This document shows positions 25,956-53,386 of a DNA stretch of 64,000 nucleotides, piece by piece. Under the pieces are notes generated by a model. That model was not told the origin of the DNA, did not search any database, and saw only the letters and a program-made list of their open reading frames with translations. This DNA is from Setoptus koraiensis (lineage: Eukaryota; Animalia; Arthropoda). Both the position numbers and the translations under genes were made by a program. The stretch's first letter is position 1, and each line of letters opens with the position of its first letter. The stretch is taken from assembly GCA_048013815.1 (NCBI GenBank), contig CM106585.1:8990001-9054000 (forward strand). Direction: 5' to 3'.

Positions 25956-26366
25956 TGAAGTATAGTTGGCAAGACACAAGAAAACTAGACTACTATAGAT
26001 GTTATTTATCTAACACTATTATTGGAAATAATAATAATGATAATAATTTAATGAAAACATTGCTAAAAACATTATGTGCGTGTTGATGTGCAGGATAGAG
26101 TTGTAGTCAGTCTACAGAGAGATAAGTGGAACAAAGATATTGATGAATGATTCTTTAAACTAGTTGATTGTTGTTGTGGCCACAATTGTCGATCTTATTG
26201 TATGAACATGACATTGCTATATCAGCAATCATTATCATAATGATGATTATTGTGAAGGAGGCCACCACTCGCTCAGTTTGTCGAAGATATCCAGTTGTCC
26301 AGTGGCTGTTGTTGATGTCGAGACTTATGTCGATCTTTTCACTTCTATCTTTATGGTACCAATCAC

Positions 26367-27146
26367 CTATAAAGTTCCAACCGCTCCAACTCCTGATGCT
26401 CCTTTTGCGCCAACTGCACCAATAGCTCCAGTTGCTTTGCCGGATTGGCGCTCGAACTCACCACTAGATTGACCAGCACCAACTTTATCTTGCTCAATGA
26501 ATCCTTCTCTGTCGCGGAATCCCTGGTCAATGTTGACATCCTTGATTGTTTCGTGGCCGAAACCCTTGTTGTCTGTCCTGATGTTTTCACGGTTGTGTCC
26601 GCTGATGTCCTTGAAGGCGCCAGCGGTGTGGCTTGCACCAACACCCGACTTATGGAAGCTTCCGCGCTCACGTTCTCCTTGGATCGAGCCAATAGCTCCA
26701 ACGGCTCCCACTGATCCAACTGTGCCAGCACCGACGGCACCCGCTGGTCGGCTACCGCGAAATCCGCCCTGACCGCCGGAAAATTTCAATGGTACTTGAG
26801 ATGATGAGTGATGTGTAGCACCATGAGAGCCTCTTCCGCTTGAGATCAGTAATTCTTCAAGGGATACTTCGTCCAGGCCTGATGACGAGCCGTAGCCATG
26901 GTGACCGTACGAGCCGGAGCCCGACAACAGATAAGATTGACGTCTGAATTCTAATTCGCGCAACAATTCATAATCGCTAACATACTCCAATTGGCATTGA
27001 TGGTAGTGTGATGATGATGGGTAGGATTGTTCCACTGCGTAACTGGACACAGGTACTTCGAAGCTGGAGCTGCTGCCGTGAGCAGCCACCAAAACCGCCA
27101 GGCTCATTGTCGCCAGACACAAGCTAATAATCTTTGCCGAGGCCAT
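26367..27146 (-). CDS. Secreted G/S/H-rich protein, paralog A (259 aa), probable structural or cuticular protein
   Basis: Signal peptide MASAKIISLCLATMSLAVLVAA from ATG 27146, motif CQLEYVSDYELLRELEFRR, and a C-terminal 107 aa about 88% identical to paralog C. Confidence 0.85.
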   Translation of the reverse strand: MASAKIISLCLATMSLAVLVAAHGSSSSFEVPVSSYAVEQSYPSSSHYHQCQLEYVSDYELLRELEFRRQSYLLSGSGSYGHHGYGSSSGLDEVSLEELLISSGRGSHGATHHSSSQVPLKFSGGQGGFRGSRPAGAVGAGTVGSVGAVGAIGSIQGERERGSFHKSGVGASHTAGAFKDISGHNRENIRTDNKGFGHETIKDVNIDQGFRDREGFIEQDKVGAGQSSGEFERQSGKATGAIGAVGAKGASGVGAVGTL

Positions 27147-27296
27147 TGTGTTGTCCTGTTGCGTTGTTGTTTCCAAATTGGATCGTCTAAGTCGAGAATT
27201 GAGAAAAGACAATTAATATAATGAGTTGAGAGATTGAGAGTTTGAAAATTGAGACTTTTGCGGTGTAAAATTTGTTCACTCGTTCACCGTGCCTAC

Positions 27297-27395
27297 CTGA
27301 TAATGATTGCTAGTGAAACTGATTACTGGTTACTTCTTGATTGGACAACCCAAGTGGTACTGATGACAATCGGCAGCGGACGGCTCGCTTAAATA
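27297..27395 (-). promoter_or_regulatory. Core promoter and non-coding exon 1 of paralog A
   Basis: On the minus strand: TATTTAA (27395-27389), TCAGT Inr (A at 27361), CAG|GTAGGC donor at 27296 and acceptor at 27156 (141-nt 5'UTR intron). Alignable to 50121-50220. Confidence 0.7.
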
Positions 27396-29719
27396 CTCTC
27401 AGTTTCAATTGAAAACATACAAATCCAATATTTTCGCTATGCAACGTTCGCCCCATCTGTCCTTGATTACGCTGCACGTATGGACCACGTAAGCCGACCG
27501 AAAATCAAGTGCAGCCAGCAACAACAACAACAGCAATTGATTTGCAATGGGCGCCGTCGATGTCGATGACAGGCTCAATTAATTAGCACGAGCAAACAAT
27601 GCTTGCTCATGTTGCCGATTTGATTTGTTCATCGTCAGTCGACTCGCTGGCGGCTTGATACTTCCGATGATGCGCTTGCTGTGTGATTGCTGGCTGCGTG
27701 TCACGTCACCCGGGAGCCGACACAAGAAAAGCGAGGACGAGAAAAACAAAACAGAGAGCAAATGAAACAAACGAACAAAATGAAACAAATGAGACAAAAT
27801 GAAATGGCAACAATTAGCCACCAGGTAAATGAGAAAATTATTTAATGCACAATCTCTGGAGCCAAGCCACTTGTTCACATTGTGAGCGCGATTAGTTGCG
27901 ACTCGAAACGAGTTTAACAGACCACACCAATCTCGGCCACTTGCAGAAATGTTTGCTCATGTTGATTTGGTTTTGCTCCAGTGGCACCAATGAATAATGC
28001 GCTGCTTACGTAACTATTTGCTGACTATGTACACTGGCTGAAAACAGATAACAATAATAATGAAAGTTCAACAATTAAAGCAGCAGCAGCAGCCAGTTTC
28101 GTAGTGTCAGGCAATTTAGATTGAGTTTGCTGTTTCATTTGTTTTTTCATCGGTGAGCACTCATTTGGTCGATTAAGTTTTATAATTGCGCGCAACGAGT
28201 CATTTATCACGGATTAGTTAGCGTTGGTGCCAGTGCTGACGGGTGACAAATGAGCTTCACTCGATTGCCCTCTCTGCGGCCCATTATTATTGGCCCAACT
28301 AGGCCCAGTAATAAGTAGCAGTGATAATGGCGATAGTCGTGCGAATACCCCAAAGTGCCATTAAAAAGTAAAATCGAAAATAATCACAAGTATTGAAATA
28401 TCTGCGCCGCGGCCGGGTTAGTGTGTAACGCGCCGGCGAGAGAGAGAGAGAGAGAGGGGGGGATCGTTACCGATTTGAAATGAGATTTTCGAAAGTTAAC
28501 ACTGACTTTTGTGGGGCCATCTTCGAGCGCTATAAACTTTCAATTTTGTCACTGGTGTTTCAATTTAGTCACTAGTAAGCGCAACCCCAAATTATCATTA
28601 CCCGAAAACTATCATCACCTAAGTGACACACAAAATGGCTATTTACTGCAAATGATAACTGTCTTCTCTTTTGGGTGGCTGTGCCGCTGAGAAGCGACGA
28701 TAAAAGTCTTGCTCCTCGAATAATAGATATTAGATTTTGGCTTCAGAATGGATGGTTGCATGGCAGGTATCACAAAATGTTGGCGCCCTCGCTGGGGCAC
28801 ATAAAATGTCGCTGACTCCATCTCTTTCGCTCAACTCCAAATAAAGTCTCCCTCCCCCTCCCACTTCAACCACAAACCACATTTCAAGTGTGCATTTGAA
28901 TGCGCTTAAAATTGCAGTTGTTGTTTTGGGCGCCAGTGGACACACGATCATTACGTCATAATAGCTGCTATTAGGTCACAACATACAGCAATGGGCCGGT
29001 GATCAAAAGTGATTTAGGCCGAGCAGTGGCTGCAGCCCAGCAGTGGATGTAGACACTAGAGCCTAGTGAGTAGAGATAGAGAGAAATTGATAATGTTAAA
29101 ATAGAGCAAACATCATCAATTTTAATTTTCTCTTTCTTTTTCCATTTTGTGCCCGAACTGTTATAGCAGTATATGATAGTATATAGACAATGACAACTAC
29201 ACTTTAGCGCAATTATTAGCCAGCCAAACGGGCCTTTCTGTGGCAGTGTTTTTTTTTTGATGACTATTCCACAATGTTTCTATCCTTCGTTTGCTCTTTC
29301 GGCCCGTTGTGACAGCCAGTGGATTAGATCACTAGTGTCGCTAATGACAAATGATGACCTTACGTGTCACACGATCTCATCGGTGACTTATTGGCGGTTA
29401 ACAGGCAAAGTGACTTAGTGGAGATGACTTGGTCATCATCATTTGGTGTTGCCATTAGGCGAGTTTTACCACTCGATGATGATCAATTGTCAGTTGTCGT
29501 CAATTGAGACAAATCGTTGCAACGGCCTGCTCAGGTACTCACACAACTCGTGAGCCATCGTGTAGCCCTATTGTGTGCCGTATGGTAGCTGGATGACTGA
29601 GTCACAATTGTTGACGAGTCACAAGAATTGATTTTGCCAGCGACAATTGGCAAATAGATTATGTGATCAGCGAATTATCATTAATTGTTGCCAATTGTCA
29701 ACGTGCGATGTGGCGCTGA

Positions 29720-29936
29720 TATAAATAGATCGACAACTGGCCGTCCGGCGACACTTGATAACTTGATAACACTTGGAGTTGCGACTTGATTGATCACCGA
29801 CACACACACAGTCCAGCAAAACAAACAGCAAACAACAGTCGGCGGTCGAGCAAACAATCAATCGTCATCGTCACATTAGAATAGACGGCAAACAGTATAT
29901 TTGACAGCGTCAATTGAACGCCAGGCCACAAGTCAG
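29720..29936 (+). promoter_or_regulatory. TATA box and non-coding exon 1 of paralog B
   Basis: TATAAAT at 29720, CAG|GTGAGT donor at 29937, and CAACAG acceptor at 30077, 3 nt before the ATG (141-nt intron). Confidence 0.65.
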
Positions 29937-30080
29937 GTGAGTGCACGCGTACAGCAAAGTGTCACAACTGTCACAGTGTTTAAAACTAACTTGTCACTCT
30001 ATTATATAACTGACTTGTCACTAAATTACATCGACTAACTCATCGTGTCACATTGGTCGTGATTTATTGCGCAACAGACA

Positions 30081-30878
30081 ATGGTTTCCGGCAGCAGCAG
30101 CAGCAGTGGCAATTTGGTGGGCCTGCTCACGAATGGGGCCCTCGTATTGGGCGCCATGTTGAGCGTGGTGTCGTGCTTCTCCGAGGAGGTGTATCCGTCT
30201 GAGGAGTTGCAAGTGAATCAGCGTCAGCATTTCCGAAGATCGCTGCCCACGCACAATGTTGGCTTTTCGCGTGGTCAGTGTCTGGACATACTGTTAGACG
30301 AGGAACTATTGAACGAATTGACATTTCGTCGTTTGCAGCGCCAACGTTTGGCTCACCGAGGCGGCGAAGTGTCGCCATTGCATCATGGCACTCACATTGG
30401 AACGCCACTGGCTGTCACAAATGGCGCTCATCATCATCATCATCATCATGCGCATCACCCTGGCGGACAGGTGTCGCAAGAATTGGTGGCGGGTGGCTTT
30501 GAGCAGGATTCGGCGGGCCTTGTTGGCGGTCAGTTTGAGCGAGAGCACGAGCACGATCACGCGCAATTGGACAACAAAAAATTAGAATTGGGTCATGTTA
30601 GTGGTCAGTTTTCGGATGTTGGCGCCAGCGACAAGAAAGTGTTTGAATCGGACACAAAGTCGCACGGATTGTTTGGTGGCAAAGACAAGCACGTTCGGCT
30701 TGAGGAGGACGCAAATGTGCGCGACCGGGAGGGCCGCTTCGAGGGCGACCTGCTCAAGGCAGAGAAATCGCGCGCCGTCTTAGATCACGATCGCAAGGCG
30801 AGCGCCGCCAAATTGGTCGGGGCCGGCGTGAAGCACTCGTCGGGCTCGTTCGTGGGCGCAAAACAACAGGCAAACTAG
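30081..30878 (+). CDS. Secreted His-rich protein, divergent paralog B (265 aa)
   Basis: Hydrophobic leader ending LGAMLSVVSC, motif CLDILLDEELLNELTFRR, poly-His tract, and a C-domain (HVSGQFSDV...DTKSHG...RDREGRFEGD...GVKHSSGSFVG) alignable to paralogs A and C. Confidence 0.8.
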   Translation: MVSGSSSSSGNLVGLLTNGALVLGAMLSVVSCFSEEVYPSEELQVNQRQHFRRSLPTHNVGFSRGQCLDILLDEELLNELTFRRLQRQRLAHRGGEVSPLHHGTHIGTPLAVTNGAHHHHHHHAHHPGGQVSQELVAGGFEQDSAGLVGGQFEREHEHDHAQLDNKKLELGHVSGQFSDVGASDKKVFESDTKSHGLFGGKDKHVRLEEDANVRDREGRFEGDLLKAEKSRAVLDHDRKASAAKLVGAGVKHSSGSFVGAKQQAN

Positions 30879-31146
30879 ATTATTATTGTTGTCGCCAACA
30901 ACTGATTTGTCGTTGTTGGTGGACACGCCGCAAACTGTTGTTGTTGTTGTTGTTGTTCAACACGGCCGACATGAGGCCCGCCAATACGAGACAACGCTCG
31001 CACAATGCAAATCAACCAGCCGCTTGGATATCAATCAATATGTTGATTCTATTATTATTATTGTTAGTGTTATTATTATTATTATTATTATTTGCAGCAA
31101 CATTGTTCCGCCAGAGGCGCTGCCAGCGACAACGGCAAACAGCAAC

Positions 31147-31209
31147 TGGACAACATGGCGCCCAACATTGGACAACATGGCGCCCAACACTGGACAGCAT
31201 GGCGCCCAA
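31147..31209. repeat. 22-bp tandem repeat x3 (TGGACAACATGGCGCCCAACAY)
   Basis: Units start at 31147, 31169 and 31191. Confidence 0.9.
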
Positions 31210-33002
31210 AAGAGCACAATCTAGCTCGAGTTGAACATCTCTAATTAGCCCCATTCAGCCCCAACCGGCCCCAACCGGCCCCATTCAGCTCTATTCAGCC
31301 ATTCGGGTTACAACAGCAACAACAACAGCAGCAGCAATGTTATTATTGTATTATTATTATGTAATAATAAAAGGCATCAGCCAATTACATGTGATCATGA
31401 GACCAATTACCGCCCTCTGTCAATCAATCTGCGCCCCCGCCGCGGCTCAGTCTACGCCGCGGCTCAGTCTGCGCAACTGTGGCAACTGCGAGCAACCCGG
31501 GCCCGGCCGGAGCCGTCCCGCGTGCCGCATGCAAATTCTAATTAGTAATCACTCTGCTCTTTCACTTCATCAACCTGCGCTGCTCGCATAAAATAATTAG
31601 CCCGCATCCGCCCGATGCCCTCACTTAACTTGCTGCCCAGTGCGCGGTCCGCGGTCCGCTATCCGCAGTCCGCAGCGCCAAGTGGGCGCAAACTACAAAC
31701 TACGCGGTCCCCACAGACAAACTAATTAGTTACCTGTTTCCCCGTTGTCGTTGCCGTCGCTGCTGCCGTCGTCGTTGTCGCTCTTTCCCCCCGCCCATGC
31801 AAATCAAATCATCTCTTGGTGCGCCGGAGCGCCCATGCGGTCACAGGCCCGGGGTGACACGGGGCCCAGGTAGCTGTTACGTGACGATCAGCTGCTCGGC
31901 GGGCCACATTAGCAGTGTTGTCAGTGTTGGCGTGGCGCGCACAACAACCGCGTCGATGCAACAACAATCAACAGATACAACCCAAAATAGACAATGTATG
32001 TCGCTGTTGGCGCGATCCTGACTGACACCCGCCAACGACGGGTTGCGTAATCTGCTCAGCCCCAATCAGCTGCTCGTTGTTGCGCTGTCAGTTGTCATTG
32101 ACAGCGAGCAAGCCGAGCGTTGGACACATCAGAATAAATCAGTCAATTGCCGCTAATCAACTTGCTCCCGTTGTCCGCTCTCTGTTGCCCGTTTGTGTTG
32201 CGTCACAACTTTGTTACATAACTTGCCACCGGCCCGAACGGCCGCGCCGTGTGACGCGCGATTGCGCCAGCGGAAATGAGCTTACGGGGGCCCTCTTATT
32301 TTACCTTTCGCGTCACCACTAAGACGACGACGACGCCGACGACGCCGACGATTATCCGCCAGCGACCTACAGCGAGCGCTGCACAGCCGACCTGTGCTGC
32401 GGACTGTCCATCTTGCGTCGGACCCTGGTCGCACCGCCGCGGAACCCGCCCCGTGCGCCCTCCGAGCCGCACACGCGGGGACGATCTGGCGGCCCGGACG
32501 CGTCGGGCCTGATTAGCCAGTCGGCGCGGCGCTCTTCTGATTGACTTGGCGAGCTGTCGGCTGCCAACTAACAAGTATTGTAAGTGCACAATTTACACAC
32601 AGCGACAGGGGGCGCACAAAGCAGCAGCGGCAGCAGAGTGACACTAATCGAGCCATCTAATCTAATTATTGGCGGCCGGACATGGCGCACAAACGGGCGA
32701 CACGGGCCAATTATGTTAGTGCGCGCCGGGCATGTTGTGTCGTCATTGGCACACGACGGACATTATTATCGAGCTCATTGTTTTTTCGGCCGGCGCCGCC
32801 GTCTCCATGTCCCGCGATGTCGCTGCCGATGTGGCCACCGGCCCGATGTCGGCGCTGGCCCGATGTCGGCGCTGGCGTCCCGTCGCCCAAAACTGTCAGC
32901 GTTTGTGCGGCCCGAAACAATCGCCGAGCGGGCCCCATCGATCATGCAATTGGGCCCCAAACACGCTAGCCGGCGCCGTCTATTAATCGACGGGGCGCAA
33001 CA

Positions 33003-33251
33003 TTACATAATAAGCTGCTGATTTGACACACACATATGACACATAATGGACGTGGCTGTGTGTGTGTGTGTGTACACACATAATATTATGTCTGACATTA
33101 CGTAACATGCCAGCGAGTTTACAACTACAGACAACAACTCTAATTCCATTATGTGCGCCAGTGGCGTCGCACTTGTTTTGTCGTGACAAGACGCGCCGCG
33201 CGGCCCGCAATACATTACGTAATACACTACACGTAGTAACGTATTACGTAA
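33003..33251. promoter_or_regulatory. Cluster of PAR-bZIP/NFIL3-type sites (TTACGTAA x3, TTACATAA x1)
   Basis: Sites at 33003, 33098, 33215 and 33244. Function is inferred from the consensus only. Confidence 0.4.
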
Positions 33252-34041
33252 TGTGGCGGCTGTATTTTAGCGGCGCGTTGCGTCTCAGCGGTGCTGCCCG
33301 TAACAAGTTTGGCGATAATGATAAATTTGAATATGATGATGATGATTTAAATTAGATTTCGCCCGGCCGCGCGCGCTCGCTCGCTCGCTCGCCGATCTCA
33401 TTATGTGCAAATTGTGTGAAAATTATGCGCAAATTTTTACTGGCACAGCGCCACTGATGATCTAATAATTGGCAGTGTGTGTGTGCCCGGCGCCGCGCAA
33501 TTTTATTTTATTTTTATTGCCGCGTGCGTGTGTGTGTGTGTGCGTGTGCGTGTGTCAGAGGTAAATTAGATCATCTCATTTGATCATCTCGCCCGTCTCG
33601 CTGGCCACGTGTTCCACGTGTCAAAAGTGGACCTGGCGCGCGCGCGCGCAGCCCGTGCTCATCAGCACGTCGAGGGCGGCGCGTGCCCGCCCGGCCCGGC
33701 CTGGCCCGGCCCGCCTGGCTGCAACGGGCGGCCGTTGCGCCAGAAATCGCCAGCGGAATTGGTCGCGAACGGGGCCAACTCTCCGCCAGTTCGTTTGTTC
33801 CGGCGAGTCGCTCGCCGGCGCCCCAACAGGCAGCCCCAACTGGCACGGTGGCGCCACCAATTACGCATTTAATCATGCCGCTCTATCTAGGGTTATAATT
33901 GAATTTTCAATCACTGTGCGCTGCGCGGCGGCCGGCTCGCACTTGGCCGCTCGCTATTTAACCTATTTCCTATTAGTTTTATCCCTATTATTCTTTTCTC
34001 GTTCTGGCGCAAGCGGTTGTCGTCGGCGCGTTGCCGTTGTT

Positions 34042-34101
<60 letters not shown>
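34042..34101. repeat. (GTTGCC)10 hexanucleotide repeat
   Basis: Direct reading. Confidence 0.95.
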
Positions 34102-34105
<4 letters not shown>

Positions 34106-35529: not shown

Positions 35530-35587
35530 CTGTCGATTGCTGTCAATTGCTGTCAATTGCTGTCATTGGCTGTCAATCGCTGTCAAT
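35530..35587. repeat. 10-bp minisatellite CTGTCAATTG x6
   Basis: CTGTCA at 35540, 35550, 35560, 35570 and 35580; the first unit has CTGTCG. Confidence 0.9.
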
Positions 35588-36710
35588 GTCATGAGCAATG
35601 ACCTTGTGCCTGGGATGTGTTGCCGTTGTTGTGACAACTTTGCACCTGTCACCCAGTTTGACACAAACTGGGTGACAACACAAACATTTCTAGTGTCAAC
35701 AGCAGCAGTTGCTCATAAACAACAGTGGTGTTCGTGATACTAATTATAGATTTACATTGTTTCAGACGCAACGTCATCTCGGTGCTCGCTTGCAATGACA
35801 CATTTGCGAATTTAGGTGCAGCGCCAACAATCTCTGGTATGCATTTTGCGTGTGTTTGCTTGTGTCGACAGGTGAACATGATGAGACAGAGCAATTTGCT
35901 GATCACGCGTCGCGACACGGTGACTTTGAAAAAGCTTGTTTCGGCTTGTCCTGTGCCTTTTTCTTTTTTCTGCCAGACGACAGTTCGTCTGGCTGGAAAA
36001 TGAAAAAAAAATGAAAAAAAAACGAAGCGATTCGTCGCTAAAAAGTCTATTGATAGAATTAGTGTCTGGAAACTGATGCCACTAACGCTATTAATAATAT
36101 AACCTTAAATACAACGCGACCCGAGCTGGCCTATTGAGCCGAGCTCGGCGCGTCGACGGAACGATCCCGTTCGCTCATCGCTCGCTGCTCGCAGCCCGAT
36201 TGTGGGCCCAATTCAGTGTCGAGCTCAAATCTGATGCCAATTTGACGAGGGGCAAGGGTCAACAAGCGCCGCACAAAATCGCCCCAGTCGACAGCGAAAT
36301 CTCGCATTCTTTCGCCCGGCCCAGACGCTGTCAGATACCTTTACCTGTTGATGTGCGCTGATGAAATCATCTGACTGTATCACCTCTGAATCAGGCGGCT
36401 GTTGCGCATTCGGTATCGAGCAGGCCGGCTGACACAGACGAGCACGCTCAGACAGAGTAGCTCTATTTGTGGGTGCTGCAACCTTGTGACTTATTTCGCG
36501 TCGAGCTCATTATTGTCATCGCGGCGCCGTCGACTATAAATGCGTTTCATTTTGCACTTGTTCACTTTCCACTCTTCACTATGCGTGCCGTATGATTAGC
36601 TGGCAAGAATTACACAAATAGAAAAGCTCGTTGTAGTGCAAAAAACTTTTAATTCGTCAACACTTGTATTTGTGGCTTGCCGAAATACTTTTGTATCAAC
36701 GCGAAACAGA

Positions 36711-36870
36711 TTTCGAGGAATTTCAAACCATTTCGAGAAATTTCTAACCATTTCGAGAAATTTCAAACCATTTCGAGAAATTCCAAACCATTTCGAGAAA
36801 TTTCGAGAGATTTCAAACAATTTCAAGAAATTTCAGACAATTTCAAGAAATTTCAAGCAATTTCGGAGAA
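36711..36870. repeat. 10/20-bp minisatellite (TTTCGAGAAA/TTTCAAACCA, 16 units)
   Basis: Almost every 10-nt unit starts TTTC. It lies directly upstream of the homeobox gene's first ATG. Confidence 0.9.
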
Positions 36871-36895
36871 CAGTGCCAATCCGTTAGTTTGCGAA

Positions 36896-38899
36896 ATGCT
36901 TTTCGATGCCGATGGAGACAATTCGCGTCTTTCGGAGGCTCGCGATAGCAACAGTGATGAGCGCGACAGTATTCAAACAGACAATGTTTTCGCCCGACAA
37001 TGTAAGCGCTCGAAATCAATTGACGACAACGACAGCAGCTCGATGATAGAAACGCCGTCGTCGTTGTCGCCAACAATTGACGACCGTCCCAACCAGAAAT
37101 GTCAGAAGCAGCTCGATTTCAAGCTGAACTCGTTGTGTCAAAAAGAGACCAGTGCACTGTATCGGTCACAAAGTTCCCGTGGGCGCGCCGACCTCATAGT
37201 TGGGCACGACGATGACGACGACGACGACGACGAAAATTTCACATACAATAACAAGAGAATGTTCGGTGATGATTGCACTGCCCTCAACGGCAATTTCGAC
37301 AAGCTCGGCAAGCTCGACAAATCATCACTGGTGTACCTCATGTTGGCTTGTCAGCAGCGACAGCATTCGTCGGCCAGCAGCGATGCAACAGCCGAATACG
37401 TGTCGTTGCCTGACTGTATGCCAAACAAGAGCTGCTATAGCGACAGTGGCGGACTGAGGCCCGTCGTTGGCCAAGACAGTGACGGACTAGGGAACGCAGA
37501 CAGAAAACACAAATTTGGTGGCTCGAAAGTGGCCGAAGACGCAACTATTGATGGTCAAGCAAATGAACGGGATCAATTGTCGATCATGAGAGGCAACAAC
37601 AACAGCCACTTGTTGACCAACCAATTATCGAGGCGTCGCATAGCGGTTGACGTTTGCTGCAAGTCTGTCGCTCAGGTGAATCACTTGTCAGAAAAATCAC
37701 TCGCCAGCAAACAGTGTGCCAAATCTAGCCAGCAAACATTTGCGACAAGCCATGATGACGCAAGCAGACAATCGTCGTCACCATTGTCAGCATTGATGAG
37801 ATGGTGCGATAGTGGCGACGTCAGCAGTGTGCTTGATTATAGTTGCAAGACAGCGACAACAACAACCTGTAACATTAATACATGTAATAGCATCAATCAC
37901 TGTGGCGCCGGTGAGCAACTGGCAACCGGAAGTGAGCAACGTCCGCACAGTAACAATGCTGAGCTGCCGTCAAATGATTTGCTGGTGCGACCACAGCAGC
38001 CAACATTGAAATCGTTGCTACTGATGCAAAAGAAGGGCCCCGTTGATGGGAGCAAGGAGACAGCGTCGCTAGCGGAACCCGCAACTGAGTTTTGTGGCAG
38101 ATCGCTATGTGGCGCTGACGTGACTTGGAGCGACATGAAACACAGCCCGGCTAAATCGGTTGAATCAACTAATTTAGCAACTCTGTTTGCGTCCAACAAA
38201 CATTTGAACACTCTGCAAAATGCTGCCGCCGTCAATGGTAGCGCAATTAGAAATAGACACCAACAACAAATTAAACCGATCAACCGACAACAGCTGACAA
38301 ACGATGCATGGTCGCGATTAAACAACAACGAAATACCGGCACAAACAACAAATTATACTAATAATCACAATTTTCCAACTCCCGCACAATTGTTGCCGGA
38401 TGGCAAATCTCAGCAAGTGAGGTCTTGCGCTTCCGGTAGAGAGGCCCAGCAGAACAGGACAGCATCAGCTAAATGGTCGCAGCGTGCGCGCTCTAAACAT
38501 CCGGCGATCAGCTCATTGCTAGTGACACAACAAATAACGACAACAGGTCAGCACCAGCGACAGCGCTTTGGCGCCACTGATTTCTCCACGCCGCCAATTG
38601 ACAATCAGCAAGCCAGCAGCGTCTCGATCAATCAATGGACCCACAGAGACAATTTCAATTCTTCTCGGCACAATAATGATTACAGTGGCAGCAGCAGCAG
38701 CATCAGCACAACAAAATTAATAGTTGGCAATTGTAATACTCACCTGTCCAGTTCATATTCACCTGATGCTGCTGCTGCTATCGTAAACAGCGACAACACA
38801 ATGGCGCAACCACAGTCCGTCTACTGTCTGGCCAATCAGACGGCGCCCATGATTAGACAGGCCGGTGAAAATGTTGCCGGCGCTATCGACCAGCAACAA

Positions 38900-38930
<31 letters not shown>

Positions 38931-41540
38931 TGAATGCCCTAGTTTACGCTCAATGGCATCAACGACAACAACAACAACATTCGGCGAGTATCTTGTCGAA
39001 GGGGGCGCATCAGGTTGGCGCGAATCATCAGCATCAATTGCATCACGATTTACGTGCATCGTTGGCGGCAACAGCGCCCACAACGACGCTACCTGCTAAA
39101 ACGCCAGCTAACGGTCAACAAGTGGCCCATCATCAATTTAATCAATTGCACCATCAGCTGCACCAATTACACAATCATCAACATCATCATCAGTATCAGT
39201 CTCATCTTCATCAGCAAAACAATGACAACAGTTTGTTGTTGTTGCGTAGAAAACAACGCCGCAACAGGACGACTTTTAGCACTTATCAATTAGACAGATT
39301 AGAGGAGGCCTTTGGGCACACTCATTATCCCGACGTGTTCACCCGCGAAGAGTTGGCCGTTAATATTGGCCTCACAGAGGCGCGAGTTCAGGTGAGTTCA
39401 GGTTTGCGGCAAGTCGCCAATGCCGGTCTGCTTGTCTCAGTTGGGTCGAGGCAAGCAGGCGCGACAACCCAATTTAAGTCGTTTTCAATCCAACCTGCTC
39501 CGAAGAAATTTTCGATAGAGAAAATTTCGGAAGGAAATTTCGGGAGAGAATCTAGGGAGAAAATTTCGGGGGAGCATATTTCGCCCGAAAATTTCTTCGG
39601 AAGCAGGTTGGATTGAAAACGACTCAAATTGGGTTGTCGCGCCCGTTTGCCTTGACCCAACTGAGACAAGCAGACCATCATTGGCGACTTGCCGCAAACC
39701 TGAGTGATGAAAAATATTTTCTATGACCTTTCATGCTGATTGTAGAGTGACAAGAGGTCAATAGCAGCATTTTTCAACCTCAGCTCAGTGGTTTTACATT
39801 CAATCAATAGCTGAATGATTTCGGTGGTTTCGCGGCCAGCAACGATCTAGTTGCGAGCTGCGCAAAAGATTTTCTCAAATGCGATTGTAACCAGCGACAG
39901 ATTTCCAGAGGCCTCGCATTAGTTTTTGAAGCACAACGATCGTAATTTGTGTATCTCATGTGTCAATTGTTGTTTTACAGGTTTGGTTCCAGAATAGACG
40001 GGCAAAATGGCGCAAATACGAACGCAAGGTGGCGTCCGTGATGAATGGCGATCAATGCAATCAGCCAACAATGAACAATAATCTCAGGTCGTCGTTGCGA
40101 GGATCCGAGGAAAGTTTAAAAGAGGCTTCCGATGGAAAGACGGCGATTAACAGTTCCAAAGACAACAGTCGTGATACAACACCAACAACGGATAATAACA
40201 GTGGGCATAACGACGACGACGACGACGACGGCGACGACGACGATGTCGACAAATCAGGCGGAGACAGCGACCAGAAATGGCATCTCCAACAGGCCGGCAA
40301 TTTGGGCGCGTCTCCTGTCGACGGCGCCACTGTTTGTGACGAAAACGATGATAGGCCTCGCAAAGAATCACGCCGCACCAATCATCACGAGCAGACCACT
40401 AGATTGAGATTTTCGCAGGCAAACATAGAGAGAATGTCCATTAAATTGCTGGCAACAAACGATGATTGCATAGAAGAGATGAACGAAAACGATATGATTT
40501 CTAATATGATTTCCGGTGATAATTCGCACACTGTTGCGTCATTGGCAATATCATCGTCGGCGTCGGCGGCAGCCGCAAGCCAAAACACATTGGCACATTT
40601 GAATGGCAATAGCAATCAGCATTTTCAATACAGCGGCAGCAGTAGCAACAACAACAAGAGGTCAGTTGGTCAAACGAACAGGAAAGAAGACGAAGAGTCG
40701 TGCAAATTGAAGCAGTACGAATGGAACGACATCGAAATAGTTCCGGCGAGCAGGGCAAAGGCGAAAGTGGTGCCACCTAGACGAATTGGCGCAGACAGTC
40801 TCAGTCAATTGAGGTCGCAGGCTGATTTGACATCGATGGCTGACCAGCAGCAGCAGCAGTATCGAGAGTCACCTGAAAATAACCCGATTTATCCGTCGTT
40901 GTTGTTGCCGTCAATGGGCAACTCAGGCAACAATAGTGGCAGCACAATTGTTTTAAATCAGTTGTCATCGGCAACAACAAAACTAGATCATCACCAGCAA
41001 CAGCATCAACTGCATCCATACGCCGGCAACGGCAAGCTCGAAACAGACAATCCGTTACATAACGGCACCTGTCTCGGTAGGTGGCCGCATCATTTACCTG
41101 TTGCTGCTGTCAACGGGTCCATAATGGCGTCGGTCAACGGTCAGCATGCCGTTAATTCGAGCGCTTGCTTGTCGAGTCTGACTGCAGCGGCGGCGGCGGC
41201 CGCCGCAGCGGCCGCAGCAAATCGTCAGGCTAGCGTCAATTCTGCGGCCGCTGTCATGGCGAGCAACGGTCAAGATTATTTGCAATTTCGCACCCATTTT
41301 CTCAGGTACCAATACGATCAACAGGTCAAAATGATGATGGCCAATATGTCATCGTCGTCGTCGTCGTCGTCGGCCGGCCAGCATCTCAGGTTGACGACAT
41401 CGGTGGCGCCGTCGTCGTCGTCAATGGCACCAGATAACGGTGCCTTCGCAATGGCGATCAATCAACAGTCTACAACAACAACAAATGTAAGCAGCAACCA
41501 AATTAACCCGTCGAGAGCCGATGAAGAGCAGTCTGCGTGA
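36896..41540 (+). CDS. Q50 paired-like homeobox protein, Drgx/aristaless-like; join(36896..39391, 39981..41540), about 1,351 aa
   Basis: Spliced homeodomain (LRRK)[46 protein letters not shown]|[15 protein letters not shown], with a GT-AG intron at the canonical Q|VWFQN position. [12 protein letters not shown] and WRKxER best match DRGX as I recall it. The start codon is uncertain and upstream exons are possible. Confidence 0.9.
39398..39703. mobile_element. Long inverted repeat (foldback/MITE-like) in the homeobox intron
   Basis: Arms at 39398-39514 and 39586-39703 differ by 6 substitutions and 1 indel, with a 71-nt spacer. TGAGT direct repeats occur at 39393 and 39701. The inverted repeat is certain; the mobile origin is inferred. 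Confidence 0.6.
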
Positions 41541-43965
41541 TCCGCTACAGCGACAATTCACGAGATCGCCCACGAGATTGTTGTCAGCGGGCACAGTTAA
41601 GCAAATACACAGGTCAAGTGACGGGTTCGCAAAATAATATTTAAACAGGCCGATGCGTCACGTCAAACAAACTCGGAAATCTCGCGCGAAATCAACGTCT
41701 GACCGGCAAACTTGGCTCGCACTTTTCAGCGATTTGACGGCATTGGAGTAGACGAATTCAAACAGAGGCCAGCCGATTCATTGTAGATCAAATATTACTT
41801 CGTGCGGCTAATTAAACAGTTTAATTAGTGGAGACATCATATCATCGCGGGTATCGGATCATTCTGGCCATACAAACACTCTTGGACACACTATAGAAGG
41901 CAATGCATAGACTGGATAGTGTAGATACATAGATTGCAATAGATAGTGATAACGTGGATAGTATATATGAGTATTTATGAATAAATATTGTAAAAACTGC
42001 CCAAACACTCTGCTGCGGTGCGCCGATTTTTTTTTCGCGAAATCCACTTCCTGAATAATGCTGCTAACCGAAATCTGATGATTACTGCAGTTGCGATAAC
42101 GACAGACAACTGATCGGTGAGGAGAAAAGAATCAGTATACTCAAAATGGGTTTTTATGACATACAAACGTCAAAGTTTTCGGCTTTTTTTGGTTATTGTT
42201 TAATTGCAGGATTCATTAATAGCCGCTCTTCATGTGAAAAAAAAAAAAATGCGCACGCGGTTTTCCAGGCTTGCTGCTCCCGCTTTTTCGTCAATAAAAG
42301 TTCTGGCTGCTTCTTTTATAATTTTGCAACAAAAAAGAAAATAAAATATAGGGAAGCATGTGGTTGGTAGCTAAAAACACTCGAGATGAATTACATAATT
42401 AGCTGATGCAACTTCATTCAATATTGGACACATGTCCGGAAAAATCTAGTGCGCACATTAGTTGAAATATGATCTGGGAGAATTCATTAGAGCATATTCT
42501 ATTTGCGTGTGGGTTTTCATGACAGAAAATGTCGAATTTCGATGTTTTCGGTGAATGTAAATAAGGCCCCAAAGACTTATGTGGCCCGAGCCGACGAAGT
42601 TTCAGAGTTTTTTACGAGAATAATTTCAGTTCTGAACCGATTCTGTTATCGTCAGTGATCTGCACCAACAATCGAGTCAAGTCTAGTTGTGGTGAGTCTC
42701 TTGATCGGTGCGATAGTGGTGAATAGGAGTCGATAAAACAAACAAATCACCATATGTTGTATACATTATGCTTGTCTAGCAAGGTTAACGCTGGCGAGAT
42801 TCTATTGTAGCGACCAATGACGATTGATATCTACAACTACTCCTGCAATGCTTGGTCTTTGTAATTATCTTGCTAATTATCTCTAAATGATTGATTGATT
42901 GCTAACTGGTTACATGTGCACCTCTCAACAATGGCGATGCCAGTCGGAGATTGGCGAAATCAGGCGACCATCTCAAGTGAGCCGCATGCGCTAACTACTT
43001 GTTAGATTGCACAATCAAAGTCACGAGCACAATTAGTGTCAACAATTGCTTCTCGACAATACAAACAATGCAAACAATGCAAACAATGCAAGCATACCTA
43101 CAAACCATCGAACATATATCAATTTTGAACCGTATGGGCCTAAGAATATTGGCTACGCAATTCGACAACAATTGCACATAGGTGCTCGTGTCCAACAAAG
43201 CAATCGCAGCGACCTAGCGACCCCATTTAAGATGGTTGTTGGTTTTGAAAATCTTTTCGCGTCCGTGAACCCTCATTGAAATTTTTCCTCTGTCGCGACA
43301 CGAGAATGCGCCTATTGGCGACGAAAACTTTCTTAGACTGATGCGCTCGATAGTGATCAATAGAGGGACAAAAATCAGTTATTATCTCTATTCTCGCTTT
43401 TCCACAAACTCCAATGACATGGCCCGATTGTTGATGGCAAACGTGGGCCGTTATTAGCCGTGACCGGAAGTTGCTCTCTGGTTATTGATTGACGATTGTG
43501 CACACATTACGGGACGAATGTGACTATGAGCTGAAACACACACATATAAGCCACATGTAAGTAATCACTAGGTACACCAAAATTGGTGAAAAACTATCCA
43601 AAGTAGGCTTGTGGAGTTTTTTCGCTTTCCGACCGTCGAAATGGGTCGCATCGGTTGCTTTAGATCGTATCTCGGTTGTTTTGGACCGCGTCTCGGTTGT
43701 TCCGAGACACGAAACTCAAAAATTCATCAAGAATATTTCAGCATGTATAGTTTACGAGTGAGTCTCTGTTGCAACTAATTATTATACGACTACTTGTTGG
43801 ATGGCAATCGCGACGAGTGCAGCTAAAATTGGCCAACTGCTATAATTGATTTATTTGATTTGATTCATTAATTTGATTTATTTGATTTGATTTATTTGAT
43901 TTGATTTATTAATTTGATCTATTGATTCGATAGGGAACAACAATGGTGACATTGCTAGATTATAT

Positions 43966-45913
43966 TTAGGCGACCTCTATTTGTTGTTGTTGTTGCTGCT
44001 GCTGGCGTGATATTAATTCTTGTGATATGCGACGCTGTTTACATGCCACCGCGGCCACTAGTGCCGCTCCTCGGCCACTTCCGTCCTGCGAGAACATCAA
44101 ATTAAATTTGTATTGTTCCTTGGTGAGCTCTCTCGTCTTTTTGTTCATCAACGAATGAAAATGTGGATGATATTTGAAGACGGAGCCGTCAACGCCGACA
44201 GTTGTATGGGGCCGTTGCATCTTGTTCAGCAGTGTGGCCACGGCCGCCGAAACCAAATGTGCCGCCCTGGTGGACACTCGCGAACAAATCAACTGCACCT
44301 TTTGGCAGTCGTCGTCGCTGCAATCGTCTAGCTCGAAGGCCTCTTTAAGGGCCATTCTGGTCCATTTGGTTTCGTTGTTTTCGTACACGTCCGTCTCCAC
44401 CATACTGACATATTTTGTTCCAAACGAATACAATTCACACATTTTCTTGCTGCCTTGCCCATCGAATATGAGCCCTCTATTTACACACAAATCCACTATT
44501 ATTCTGCGACACAGCTCGCCGATGTACAAGCCAGAGATCATTTTTTCGAAGCGTTGCTTGCCCTTATTGAGCGAATTGTCATCGATTTCTCTGTCCCATT
44601 GCGTGGCAACGAAATCCAGCACGCCGTTGTCGCCGAAGGCGCCCCATTCGGTGTTGACAACAATCTGTTGCGGTTTGCCTGGCTGCTGCTGTTGATGGTT
44701 GTTTGTTGTCGCTTGTTTGTCGTCGCTACCTGTTGCTTGTTCCTCGTACAAATGAACATTGTCTATTGTTTCCATGTAGCAAGCGTTTGTGCCGGTGCCC
44801 ACGATCAAACCGACACGACATTCGCGCTCGTCGTAGGCGCACGACATTAGCGTACCTGTTGTGTCATTTACCACCGCCATTACCTCTATGTCGATATCCG
44901 GCCTTCTGGCTATGGCCTCTGTGAGCAATTGCACAACATCTTGGCCCTCGACGCCGGAACATTTGAAGCCCTTGGTCCAGTTGACTAGTTTTGCGCGAGC
45001 CAGGCCCTCTTGGCGACAGGGAAAACTAAATGTAAAACCTAGCGGTAAGCGATGATTTTTCAAATTGTGTTTCTCCGTGAACGAACACAAACAATTGGCA
45101 ATGTGATCAAACAGTTGCTCGCCAGTGCCCAACATTATATCCTGGGGCACACTGTACACCTCGCTGTCCATGTGAAATTGTTTGCTCTCTAATTCCACCA
45201 GTATAACGCGAAAGTTAGTTCCGCCTAGATCGAGCGCCAAGAATTTGCCCTCCTCTGCGCCACGCGACAAGCGTCAAATAACAAGTAATAAAAGATATAT
45301 AAATAGCAAGTAAATTGGCAATTTATCATTAGTAAATTTGTTATTAGTAAATTACGATTTGGTGTTATTATTTGGCAAGGCTCTTGCTAAGCCATTAGCA
45401 CCGCTTACCTGGCTCCGCAAAGTGGCCGTGTCCTGTGATTGCGCAATGTTTACGACAGCGATAGATTACGGCCATTACGAGATAGTACAATTAGATGATG
45501 TATAATTAGACGGAGACAGTTAGTTTAGTTTAGGTTACACGATTCATGGATGAATCGGTGATCTCGCACACACAACGTGGACTAACCCTCGTGCGACTCG
45601 TGACCGTCGTGCCTGACGTAGGTGGGGTACATCTTGACATTTGCCACGGGATTTGTCTCTCTGTGCAGGCCTCGGGCAAATTCGTGCACCAATAGAGCGC
45701 AAACATCCTCGAGCTGATGGTGTTGCAACACGAGGTTCCTAGTTACAGATTCCACCTGTCGTCAGTTGAATGATTAGTTGTTGATTAGTTATTAATTAAT
45801 TAGTTGTTGATTAGTTATTGATTAATTATTGAGTAGTCGGGCCGCGATTGGTTGTCACTAATTGTGTCACTATCACGCGTGCAAAGTGATGCAAAAATAC
45901 TCACAGTTTCCAT
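43966..45913 (-). CDS. HK: Hexokinase; join complement(45905..45913, 45587..45755, [45409..45432], 43966..45254), 488 or 496 aa
   Basis: MET|VESVT...VKMYPTYVR in exons missed by the track; GKFLALDLGGTNFRV, LPLGFTFSFPC, VVNDTTGT, IVGTGTNACY, NTEWGAFG, FEKMISG, VDGSVFKYHP and DGSGRGAAL motifs. All junctions are GT-AG and phase-consistent. Confidence 0.96.
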
Positions 45914-46264
45914 TTGATTGCTAGTTTTGTTTGCCTAATTTATGCTGAGAATTGGATATGACGATGAGCGTCGAGCGATTTGCGACCGACACTTGCAGTA
46001 CGAGTGGCCAGAATAGTTGACGAGTTGTCGAAATCACTGTGTTGTCGCTGCCGTTGACTAGACGCTGAGTTGACTAGACGCTGGCGATTGCGCAATTTGC
46101 GAACAATACTTGATAATTGCTTATTCCGGCTTATTGGTCTGATCTGGATTGATCTTATATATTCTTATATTTGTTGTTATATCATGTGTATATATATTGC
46201 GACGGCAACGTTATTTTGCTGAGCGATTCACAACTACTAAGCTCATCTTGCCACTTGTAGGCGC

Positions 46265-46272
46265 TTTATATA
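46265..46272 (-). promoter_or_regulatory. Candidate TATA box of hexokinase
   Basis: TATATAAA on the minus strand about 350 nt upstream of the ATG. Confidence 0.4.
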
Positions 46273-47070
46273 GTGCCTGTGTTGGCATGGTGCTGACAGG
46301 CAGTTTTCTGTTATGAATAGTGAATTATCATATCGTCTCATCTAACGATCATCATGATGCTGCTGTGTTTGTTGTTTTTGTTGCTGATTTAATTGTCAAT
46401 TTTAAACAGCACACGCACCAACCAATTACAAGTTGACGGATTGGGATGGGATAGATAGATTGGGTGTGAGTTAATTAGAGCGGCGACGATTGACGTCAGA
46501 GAAACAAGTGTTTGATTATGCTAAATTTCGTACGATTATATCTTGTTGTGTGCAACTCGTCTAGTGCTAGCTCTGCCCCTCATTGTCGCTTTCGAGCTTG
46601 GCTTGTCAGCCACGCTTGAAAGGCACAATAAGTGAGCTGAAGTTGATATAAAATAAAATATATCATACATCTAAATGGCGCACTCAATCATCTCTATCAA
46701 CAGTCGCTATCTTTGCAGCTCTTAAACAACTATCCGACATTGATGATATCCGACTCTTTATTATTCAATTGGAATATAGTTTGCCCTTTCAACACCAGTG
46801 AGCCTTTTTTTTCGCATATTGTCGATTGTCATATGACGACTAGTTTACAATTGCTAATGCTCGCTGCCAACACACAAAAACAAAAACAACATTGACGGAG
46901 ATCAAAAGAATCAAATCGTCAATAATTACAATTGCCGCGGCGATAAATTTATAGTTGCATCTGCAAATTTGTATAGCTGTATCTGCTGCGGGCTTGATTC
47001 AGTCGCTCAAGACTTTTCGCTGTGCCACTCTTGAATTCGTCGCTGCCTCTATCTTATCTCAGCATCTGAA

Positions 47071-47210
47071 AATATCTGAAAATATCAGAAAATATCAGAA
47101 AATATCAGAAAATATCAGAAAATATCTGAAAATATCTGAAAATATCTGAAAATATCTGAGAATATCCGAAAATATCTGAAAATATCCGAAAATATCTGAA
47201 AATATCTGAG
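47071..47210. repeat. 10-bp minisatellite AATATCTGAA x14
   Basis: Exact 10-nt period with T/A/C variation at one position. Confidence 0.95.
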
Positions 47211-49011
47211 AATGCGTGGAAATGTGTCCGATCTCTTCGATAAGAAAAGTAGCCGAGATACGAAGTGCGTTGTTGCGCTATCAGAAAACGAAATCTGTAG
47301 GATTGCTGTTATCTAACAGCAACCATTTGTCATTGTTTACATTGTTTGTCGTCAGCTGTGTTTGTTGTTCTCGGGCAGGTTTGTCTGTCTGTTTACAGTT
47401 ACTTTTTTCAACCATCCTTAATTAACCAATTTGATCACTGTTGCGCAACCAATCGAGTGTCCCCAAAAACACTGACCCTAATGCCACTAATGCTGCACGC
47501 CACTTCCTGTCACAATGATTGTCGTCACTTTCACATTTCCGAGTGCAACAGCAAACATTTTTCCGATTATTGTGCCAATTGTCATAATTGTGCGCACTGT
47601 ATATTAGTCGCTGTAAAATTTTTTGCCCTTTCCATTCGAACATACAAATGTATCGAGCAAACAAGTGCGAAAAAGTTTTTTGCATCAATTTACTCTATTT
47701 CCACTCGTCGATGCTCGATTTCTTCCGCTAGTTTCAGTGTATCTCCTCAATTGTCGGCTGCTTGCGATGCCACTCGATCTAATGAGACCAACTGGTTGCG
47801 TTGGTTTATTTTTATCTTATCAGGCCTATGTGTAACAGATGATGGTTGTGGCAGTTTTTTGCTTGGCAGACACGAACATTTGATATCTATTCGCTATTAT
47901 CTGTACTGTGTTTGAGTCATTTGATATAACGCAAAATGGCAATACTGATTATGAGCCGGGCGCACGAGAATACGAGATTGACACAAGTTGCGATTGAACG
48001 ACGACAACTTCATTCTGGCACTATTCACTAATAACTTATCAGTGGTATTTATTTATAAATTTACTAGTTGAGCATTATGTATGCGATAGCATCACAACAT
48101 TTACCACGGATTTACCCCGCAAATGTGAAGACCGTGAAACAATAGAAGATGATGCTCTTGCGCTCGTTACGGCTGCACTTGATCGGATGAACACTGCAAT
48201 CTTTTTCCATGTTCGTATTGATCATCACGATCAAATGATCATCATTATCATCATTATCAATTGCAGCAACTAACAACCAACTTGTGGGCCATCCATCTGA
48301 TCCTATTCATTATTGCATCAGTTATACAAACAAAGTATCGATTAACTGCTCTCTTTTTTCATCGCTTTCCATATTCTCATCAACATGCTGTTGTCGTGGT
48401 TGATTCTTTTTCAGTGTTCGACAATTCGTTTGATGCGGCAACAGTTTGGCGGCTATTTGTTGGTTCGCGTTGTATTCGCTGGTATCGCCTGTAATTTTCA
48501 ATTGCGTCGTTACGAATGGGTAGCCCCAACGGTCAATAAAACTTGTCGCTGCAACATGATGATTGTTTTGCAAACAATATGACCAGCAGCCAACACAAAC
48601 TCGTGGTGAGACACCTGATCAGCTGATACCGCTGATATAACTTTCTATTGTGTCAGTGATATCGGACCGCTGATATCTGTGCCATTTTCGTTTATTTTCG
48701 GATTTTCGTGAACACGAAAATCCGAAATAAATATCGAAAGGCACATGTTTTTGCCACATGCAAGCCGAGCGAGATTGTAGCAGCAATTGGCAACTGTAAT
48801 ATACTGTTGTCTGGCAGCGATTGCAACAACTGTAAATGTGAGAAAGATGTCAATCATTAATTATATCAATGGGGCTCCGGCCGAACCGAGGGGTTCGCCC
48901 AGGCTTTTATTGGTGCTTGCAGGTACACTATTAAATTGTTTATTGTCTACAGTATCAATTGATGGAAATTAAAATATTATAAGGATGGTCCGGTTTTATT
49001 CACGTAAATGT

Positions 49012-49890
49012 TCATAAACTACCCACTGCTCCCACTCCCGACGCTCCTTTGGCCGCCAAAGCTCCAATGGCCCCTGTCGCCTTTCCTGATTGTCGGTCGA
49101 ATTCGCCACTGGATTGACCAGCACCAACCTTGTCTTGGTTTATGAATCCCTCACGATCGCGGAAATCTTGATCAATGTTGACGTCTTTGATTGTTTCGTG
49201 ACCAAAACCTTTGGTGTCGGTTCGAATACTTTCGCGGTTGTGTCCGCTGACATCCTTGAAGGCACCGGTTGTGTGACTGGCACCAACGCCCGATTTATGA
49301 AAGGCTCCGTGTTCGCGTTCACCCTGAATGGTACCGACGGCGCCAGCTGCGGCCAACGATCCAACAGTGCCAGCACCCACGGCACCCGATGGTCGACGAC
49401 CGGGGAACTGGCCGGTCTGAGTGCCCGACAATCTGACTGGTCCCGGTCCACCGTGGAATGCCGACGATGATGATGAGTGGCTGCCGCCTGAACTGACCAC
49501 TAGGGGTCTGACGACGGGTCCGTGGCCACCGTGTCCGCCTAATCCGCCTTGATAGGCGCTGCCCGAGCCGGTGCCCAAGCCGGTGCCCAAGCCGGTGCCC
49601 AAGCCGGTGCCGTGCAATTTTCCGCTTGATATGAGCAATTCCTCTAATGAGAGCTCATCGAGTGTCGATGAGCCGCCATGGTGAGACAACGACGATGAGT
49701 AGCTGTGGCGTCTCACTTCTAATTCGCGCAACAATTCATAATCGCTGACATATCTCAATTGGCAATGGCTGTTGTAAGACGGGTGCTCCAAAGTGTGCCC
49801 AGTCGACTCATACACGTTACTGTGAGCCGCAACCAAAACTGCCAAGCTCAATGTCACCAAAGCCAAGCTCATTATCTTCATTGAGGCCAT
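49012..49890 (-). CDS. Secreted G/S/H-rich protein, paralog C (292 aa)
   Basis: Signal MASMKIMSLALVTLSLAVLVAA from ATG 49890, motif CQLRYVSDYELLRELEVRR, GTGL x3 repeat, and a C-domain near-identical to paralog A. Confidence 0.85.
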   Translation of the reverse strand: MASMKIMSLALVTLSLAVLVAAHSNVYESTGHTLEHPSYNSHCQLRYVSDYELLRELEVRRHSYSSSLSHHGGSSTLDELSLEELLISSGKLHGTGLGTGLGTGLGTGSGSAYQGGLGGHGGHGPVVRPLVVSSGGSHSSSSSAFHGGPGPVRLSGTQTGQFPGRRPSGAVGAGTVGSLAAAGAVGTIQGEREHGAFHKSGVGASHTTGAFKDVSGHNRESIRTDTKGFGHETIKDVNIDQDFRDREGFINQDKVGAGQSSGEFDRQSGKATGAIGALAAKGASGVGAVGSL

Positions 49891-50120
49891 TGCGTTGTCC
49901 TGATCTGAATTAAGTGCCCGCAAGTTGGTCAGTCACTAAAAACTCCTGAGTAGTTATCTAAATGGCTGGTTTGTGGCGGAGAAAAGATGGCATCAGGGCG
50001 TTAGATCAGTAATATTGTTATATATTGTTTATTGGCGTTAGATTGTATTGAAATTTCACTATTGTAATAGCCGGGATTACGCATGTAGTTTTTCAATGTT
50101 TTCAGCAACTCTCGCCTTAC

Positions 50121-50220
50121 CTGATAATCAACTGGTTGTTAGCTAAACTGATTGGTTAGTTCTGATTGGACAACTCAATTGGTACTGATGATTGTGTCCA
50201 AACCGGCGCTCCCTTATATA
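50121..50220 (-). promoter_or_regulatory. Core promoter and non-coding exon 1 of paralog C
   Basis: On the minus strand: TATATAA (50220-50214), TCAGT Inr (A at 50186), CAG|GTAAGG donor at 50120 and acceptor at 49900 (221-nt intron). Homologous to 27297-27395. Confidence 0.7.

Positions 50221-51794: not shown

Positions 51795-53386
<1,592 letters not shown>

Follow-up and report, generated by a model that had tools for sequence, protein, structure and literature searches.

The His-rich material proteins of squid beak and Nereis jaw are built of Gly/His/aromatic low-complexity sequence, with His contents far above 5-10%. Glycine-rich proteins, which customarily contain at least 20% Gly, are a second point of reference, and a disordered tick protein of this type with regularly spaced aromatic residues is reported to phase-separate into cement-like solids (PMC11772090). 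A third is DUF4779 (PF16009), a family of arthropod proteins annotated as 'histidine-rich glycoprotein-like' or 'spidroin-1-like', on which our literature search turned up no papers. Here we analyse three genes, termed A, B and C, within a 64,000-nucleotide stretch of Setoptus koraiensis DNA (contig CM106585.1, positions 8,990,001 to 9,054,000 of the forward strand; hereafter the window, by whose own numbering all positions are given). The three genes appear to encode secreted extracellular proteins that are predicted to be largely disordered, and they form a lineage-restricted family that matches no described one. For the present the gain is mainly one of annotation: any pipeline would otherwise leave these three conserved genes and their one ortholog as 'hypothetical'.

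Three homologous genes under purifying selection

Genes A (26367-27146, minus strand; a 259-aa precursor encoded by one coding exon), B (30081-30878, plus strand; a 265-aa precursor and the divergent member) and C (49012-49890, minus strand; a 292-aa precursor) are all intact, each consisting of a single open reading frame (ORF). An earlier note on this DNA had proposed a three-member family of common architecture at exactly these coordinates, and alignments as well as motif counts bear this out. The paralogs A and C are old (BLASTP 2e-80; 82% identity over the C-terminal 142 aa) and have a ratio of non-synonymous to synonymous divergence (dN/dS) of about 0.07-0.12, in which dS is saturated. 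Over 245 aligned codons, dN is 0.187 and dS is 1.63, which gives a dN/dS of 0.115; in the C-domain the values are 0.107 and 1.56, and the last 107 residues differ by 13 replacements, precisely the count given in the earlier note, with a dN of 0.07 and a saturated proportion of synonymous differences (pS) of 0.76. Third codon positions of the pair are 48% identical, compared to 82-91% at positions 1 and 2, and the purifying selection with diverged third positions that had been read from the letters is thereby quantified.

B is much less similar to the other two (BLASTP 2e-6 with A and 8e-7 with C). A failure of B to align with A and C by profile comparison had been named in the earlier note as a result that would speak against the family, but the comparison of {A, C} with {B, P0001}, the latter being the ortholog described below, is significant (hhalign probability 92%, E 6e-7, 77 columns). 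Judged by these alignments, B is a true, distant member of the family. The positions of start and stop are conserved between the paralogs and also between B and its ortholog, and two motifs mark all three genes: when the window is translated in six frames, it contains exactly three copies of the collinear N-terminal D.[ED]LL.EL..RR, which follows a Cys, and exactly three of the pentapeptide RDREG, all of them in the family ORFs, whereas 50 shuffled windows gave 0 and 0.04 occurrences per window, respectively. A, B and C are real, homologous genes under purifying selection. A tblastn search of the window with A, B and C as queries (E<=10) revealed no fourth member, and there was none among the ORFs inspected at 31.5-36.5 kb and 53.5-64 kb.

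An ortholog of B in a sister species

A HMMER profile search of 1.84 billion representative proteins (E <= 0.001) returned one single relative, P0001, which stems from the Logan assembly of run SRR33593474, and the family is undetectable in that collection beyond this one sister species. By its position, P0001 is the ortholog of B, and its translation probably starts at an upstream in-frame ATG, from which the protein would begin with MVISNSNN..., matching the MVSGSSSS... of B. With a dN of 0.167 and a saturated pS of 0.70, the dN/dS of B and P0001 is about 0.08 if calculated with the dS of this pair and about 0.23 if the dS of 0.74 is used that we obtained for the splicing factor gene SF3A3, a neighbour of the family in the window, from the same run (dN 0.049). 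The GC content at third codon positions is 0.62 in gene B and 0.42 in its ortholog (L001 50-775), while the two species hardly differ in SF3A3 (0.42 and 0.41), and due to this local compositional shift the apparent dS of B, about 2.0 as compared to 0.74 for SF3A3, is inflated. B is constrained, yet it evolves about three times faster than the housekeeping protein.

A non-coding element of 80 nucleotides (31351-31430; L001 1176-1251), which lies 400-470 nucleotides past the stop codon of B, is 89% identical between the species, in comparison to 72% for the B coding sequence. An AATAAA and several CAATTA/TAATTA-like sites lie within this element, which has no match to an Rfam family and could be part of the 3' untranslated and polyadenylation region, or an enhancer of the nearby homeobox gene. 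Trinucleotide microsatellites of the GTT/CAA and ATT types are plentiful and flank genes in both species (30929-31103, 27520-27545, 31310-31340). Such microsatellites terminate both Logan contigs of the sister species, which may explain why orthologs of A and C are unassembled in that run. Such orthologs would be expected in the sister species, as the dS between A and C (>=1.6) is larger than the 0.74 of the species pair.

Architecture of the encoded proteins

Four parts recur in all three proteins: a putative signal peptide, a Cys-helix-RR module, a spacer of low complexity and a C-domain of polar character. The N-termini are hydrophobic, with maximum 15-residue hydropathies of 2.2-2.6 (2.55 at residue 6 in A), and together with predicted N-terminal helices this suggests signal peptides, in agreement with the earlier note. 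In case of A, the signal-peptide-like N-terminus covers residues 1-23 (27078-27146, minus strand; AlphaFold helix 2-24), with a likely cleavage site between VAA and HG. The AlphaFold models of A and B were calculated from an alignment of only four sequences and have a mean predicted local distance difference test (pLDDT) score of 44 and 42, respectively. Outside the helices of the signal peptide and the N-module, both proteins are predicted to be disordered, and this includes the conserved C-domain.

The N-module extends from C51 to R69 in A (26940-26996, minus strand), from C67 to R84 in B (30279-30332, plus strand) and from C43 to R61 in C (49708-49764, minus strand), in each case by motif match, and it is kept in P0001. 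In the three-way alignment, with the residue numbering of A, the invariant positions of the module are C51, L53, D58, E60, L61, L62, E64, L65, R68 and R69. The conserved combination of Cys and helix that had been claimed for this region is recovered in both models. The acidic, Leu-rich helix covers residues 58-76 in A, at a pLDDT of about 70-76, and residues 64-93 in B, at about 66-68, and the RR falls within that predicted helix. RR is invariant in all four sequences (A, B, C and P0001), and B and its ortholog share a second conserved FRR site upstream. The further claim that the module holds the only mature Cys is correct for A and C, whose mature proteins have a single Cys, and uncertain for B, in which Cys32 is located at the predicted signal peptide cleavage site (between VVSC and F; VVAC and F in the ortholog) and may be retained as second mature Cys. 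A and C, but not B, have in addition a second acidic Leu-rich motif, LDE[VL]SLEELLISSG, which in A reads LDEVSLEELLISSG (26835-26876, minus strand).

The Gly/Ser/His spacers are rapidly changing. B contains a poly-His tract, H7-A-H2 (30429-30458, plus strand), with a His6 at the same place in P0001, and C contains a (GTGL)n stretch (49558-49611, minus strand) that A lacks. GHHGYG and GGHGGHG stretches are present in A and C. The C-domain, which in A and C includes the tail, covers residues 153-259 of A (26370-26690, minus strand), where it aligns to B and is predicted to be disordered, and residues 186-292 of C (49015-49335, minus strand), where it is conserved with A; in B the homologous domain was delimited by BLASTP and hhalign (30510-30875, plus strand). 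Phe and Gly are scattered between the charged residues of this domain, and its invariant residues are H173, G176, F178, D180, D192, K194, G197 and R211-D212-R213-E214-G215. The pattern RDREG-x2-E-x-D, which had been given for all members, applies to A and B, whereas C reads RDREG-FINQD. A hydrophobic GA-rich tail had likewise been ascribed to the whole family and is found in A and C, where the last 20 residues have a mean Kyte-Doolittle hydropathy of +1.1, but not in B, where the value is -0.23 and the protein ends in polar residues; the tails of all three contain Lys. In A and C the charged core of the C-domain is bracketed by Gly/Ala/Val stretches, and in the C-domain of B, Phe residues occur in G-x-F-[ED/S]-x-[DE] contexts at positions 140, 152, 177, 188, 198 and 220, which may reflect a rhythm of roughly 11-12 residues.

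Calculated for the presumed mature proteins, Gly, Ser, His and Ala together make up 46-47% of A and C. The Gly content is 18.2% in A, 19.6% in C and 11.2% in B, and His accounts for 5-10% across the family, with 9.9% in B. None of the three contains Trp, acidic residues slightly outnumber basic ones, and there are no N-glycosylation sequons.

Searches for related families

Pfam hmmscan gave no match for A, B and C (E<=1), and neither did it for P0001 and the isolated C-domains at E<=10, a search that covered DUF4779, Rebers-Riddiford (R&R), Retinin, spidroin and other silk or cuticle models. NCBIfam had no match for the family. PDB sequences gave only insignificant matches to the family profile (E >= 0.31), mostly beginning at chain residues 1-3, and we take these to be expression tags that meet the His stretch. 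A word-index homology search with the whole of C and with the C-domain of A found nothing, neither exact look-ups of A, B and C in a collection of 15 billion proteins nor look-ups by contig for B and C gave a record, and of 461 matches to back-translated motifs in one JGI metagenome scan, tblastn confirmed none. In a protein-language-model atlas, the nearest neighbours of the family are without exception arthropod clusters, of low-complexity, cuticle-like or His-rich type, which we regard as leads only.

Upstream regions and genomic neighbourhood

Upstream of A and C, a 78-column block is 78% identical, in comparison to about 35-45% in its flanks. This conserved block of about 75 nucleotides comprises a TCAGT that resembles an initiator, together with a short putative exon without coding sequence and its GT donor; the predicted intron that follows is diverged. 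In A, the putative TATA box, initiator (TCAGT), non-coding exon 1 and GT donor are located at 27295-27391 (minus strand), and the putative core promoter, non-coding exon 1 and GT donor of C lie at 50119-50216 (minus strand). Upstream of B there is a TATAAATA box together with a cagGTGAGT donor and an acceptor directly before the ATG, and 5' introns are predicted for all three genes. Rfam detected nothing at gathering thresholds over 25900-51000.

Genes A and B are arranged head-to-head with 2.9 kb between them, and gene C follows 18 kb further along, with a homeobox gene and a hexokinase gene intervening. The neighbouring SF3A3 gene, coding for splicing factor 3a subunit 3 (24390-25955, plus strand), is an uninterrupted ORF of 521 aa that is 90% identical to one Logan protein and only 55-60% identical to its named homologs, the best of which are from an oribatid mite, a scorpion, a horseshoe crab, spiders and ticks. 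The intronless and diverged SF3A3 points to a very long-branch, intron-poor arthropod lineage; we take the organism to be a chelicerate, probably an acariform mite and possibly an eriophyoid. About 19 kb away from the family, a 643-aa ORF (5726-7654, plus strand) contains an R&R chitin-binding cuticle domain (1.7e-13), which marks this eukaryotic DNA as that of an arthropod. The next ORF (8048-11671, plus strand; 1207 aa) has no Pfam domain, and its low-complexity stretches give weak, chance-level tblastn matches to the Gly/Ala segments of A. The window also contains two homeobox genes, which belong to different classes (36677-41540 and 51798-52784, both plus strand), and the homeodomain of the first is split between the long ORFs 36677-39616 and 39960-41540. 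A segmental duplication of a family member together with a homeobox gene was considered and rejected, as the similarity of the two homeobox genes is confined to the homeodomain (46% over 52 aa) and they are not paralogs of recent origin.

Possible functions of the family

What could these proteins do? We tentatively assign them to the extracellular matrix or to materials such as cuticle, mouthpart, cement or eggshell, with a probability that we would place somewhat short of even. A polymer, cuticle or cement role is suggested by amino acid composition, and secretion and dimerisation are, like the material role itself, inferred. Mechanistically, the Cys-helix module would pair chains by helix association and an intermolecular disulfide bond, and the His/Gly/aromatic low-complexity regions would then mediate multivalent self-association, possibly in a metal- or pH-dependent manner. 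The phase separation reported for the tick cement protein (PMC11772090) provides a precedent for such self-association, and the R&R cuticle gene in the same window is counted as context for the material role.

Several points weigh against this reading. No member of the family matches a cuticle, silk or cement family model, and with respect to the customary Gly content of glycine-rich proteins, A and C fall just short and B clearly fails. At 260-290 aa the proteins are short, and they lack the long regular repeats that are typical of fibres; the highly charged, conserved C-domain is moreover unusual for a load-bearing material. As the AlphaFold input consisted of four sequences, the term 'disordered' has to be read as a weak inference. 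If the material reading is correct, a little-studied arthropod lineage would offer self-assembling proteins that are both short and genetically tractable. Their combination of Gly/Ala segments with a helix for dimerisation and a His-rich switch would then be of interest to biomaterials research and to mite biology.

The earlier note had combined a structural polymer with an assembly step gated by cleavage at RR, and as a reading of the sequence this is plausible. The gate itself is not favoured, as the RR lies in the predicted helix and as A and C have Glu at positions P4 and P6; RR may rather be the helix-stabilising salt-bridge partner of the conserved Glu residues. A more far-reaching version would be a new class of arthropod biomaterial, in which a disulfide-paired helix keeps the chains in register and a His-rich, pH- or metal-sensitive spacer and Gly/Ala/Val segments around a charged core switch the secreted protein from a soluble, stored form to an assembled solid, with RR processing as a possible trigger. 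We consider this version very improbable; stylet, cement, eggshell and spermatophore would be candidate materials.

What other explanations have to be weighed? The proteins could be secreted at a host interface, as salivary or effector-like factors delivered by a parasitic or plant-feeding mite, and this we regard as unlikely. It is suggested by the labels of public sequencing runs. Four deep RNA runs labelled 'organism A', a heavily studied organism, with 1.6-1.7 billion letters read from each, were compared with 25500-31300 and gave zero reads, SF3A3 included, so that the label evidently belongs to another organism and these runs provide no test of expression. In other runs with the same label, 91-98% of the words sampled from genes B and C are present. 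Given this pattern, 'organism A' is most likely a host, and the organism of the window its parasite, pest or commensal. A few runs typed 'RNA?' contain 16-28% of the words of C and 5-23% of those of B, which is no more than a hint of transcription. Orphan, clustered genes with signal peptides are also typical of effector repertoires, and a Gly/Ala-rich protein family is said, in work cited by PMC11772090, to aid spider-mite feeding. On the other hand, purifying selection has been strong and long-lasting, with saturated dS both between the paralogs and towards the ortholog, unlike in fast-evolving effectors. There are just three copies, the profile search, whose sources include NCBI and UniRef, gave no named mite or tick protein, and the host label is itself an indirect argument. 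If effectors they were, A, B and C would be candidate host-interface factors.

Even less likely, in our view, is that A, B and C are pro-proteins cut at RR by a convertase, which would release a bioactive N-terminal peptide or a Gly/His-rich C-terminal product, for example an antimicrobial one; the RR-gated assembly of the earlier note is a variant of this reading. The invariance of RR in four of four sequences and the second conserved FRR of B and its ortholog would fit such processing, and Gly- or His-rich antimicrobial peptides that arise from precursors are known in chelicerates. However, the RR is embedded in a helix in both AlphaFold models, where it could equally form i/i+3-4 salt bridges with Glu residues, and with Glu at P4 and P6 the sites of A and C do not form a furin-type R-x-[KR]-R. 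Neither a Gly-dibasic amidation signal nor repeated peptide copies were read in the sequences, and the best-conserved part is the charged domain of 107 aa rather than a short peptide.

An ancestry from DUF4779, which the earlier note had raised and which would be compatible with a material role, is comparably doubtful: DUF4779 is the top named neighbour in the language-model atlas (A 0.85 with 159 shared features, C-domain of C 0.74-0.78, B 0.61), and these neighbours are arthropod proteins of similar length (205-354 aa), but all scores are below the reliability line of 0.9, shuffled proteins reach 0.8 in one third of cases, the direct Pfam test of A, B, C, P0001 and the isolated C-domains gave no match at E up to 10, and no DUF4779 member appeared in the search of 1.84 billion representatives (E <= 0.001).

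Comparison with known systems

The family can be compared with several described systems. Spidroins and silk fibroins, which have a long repetitive core and conserved terminal domains without repeats, differ from A, B and C, which have no Pfam match of any kind, are only 259-292 aa long and contain a regular repeat of at most about 18 residues. The tails of A, B and C differ from those of GPI-anchored proteins, as they are too weakly hydrophobic and contain Lys. With neuropeptide and prohormone precursors, the family and P0001 share a hydrophobic N-terminus and a conserved dibasic RR, but A has one dibasic site, no Gly-dibasic amidation donor stands by a short conserved peptide, and the unit that is conserved is a 107-aa domain. 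R&R (Chitin_bind_4, PF00379) cuticular proteins are likewise secreted arthropod proteins with Gly/Ala/His-rich flanks, and one of their genes resides in the window; the consensus domain is nevertheless absent from A, B and C, although the same kind of scan detects it in the neighbour at 5726-7654. DUF4779 proteins resemble the family in size, and their names suggest a His-rich composition as in A, B and C, whereas neither these three nor P0001 match the Pfam model and the profile search recovered no DUF4779 protein; as the language-model scores are below threshold, this kinship may be taken as a lead.

The comparison with squid beak and Nereis jaw proteins is a compositional one, carrying no evidence of homology, and the His content of A, B and C is lower; still, the GHHGYG and GGHGGHG stretches of A and C and the poly-His tract of B would suggest a pH- or metal-switchable self-association. 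Compared with the glycine-rich proteins of ticks and other arthropods (PMC11772090), no GGY, GXG or GGX arrays were seen in A, B and C, and the charged C-domain and N-terminal Cys-helix set the family apart; the 1.84-billion search detected no sequence similarity. Gly-rich repeats are represented by (GTGL)3-4 in C and by GxxG-type Gly/Ala/Val stretches in A and C, with essentially none in B. What the family has in common with these glycine-rich proteins is presumed secretion, predicted intrinsic disorder and aromatic residues spaced by Gly-rich stretches, and as secreted, low-complexity, lineage-restricted arthropod proteins, A, B and C belong to a familiar kind.

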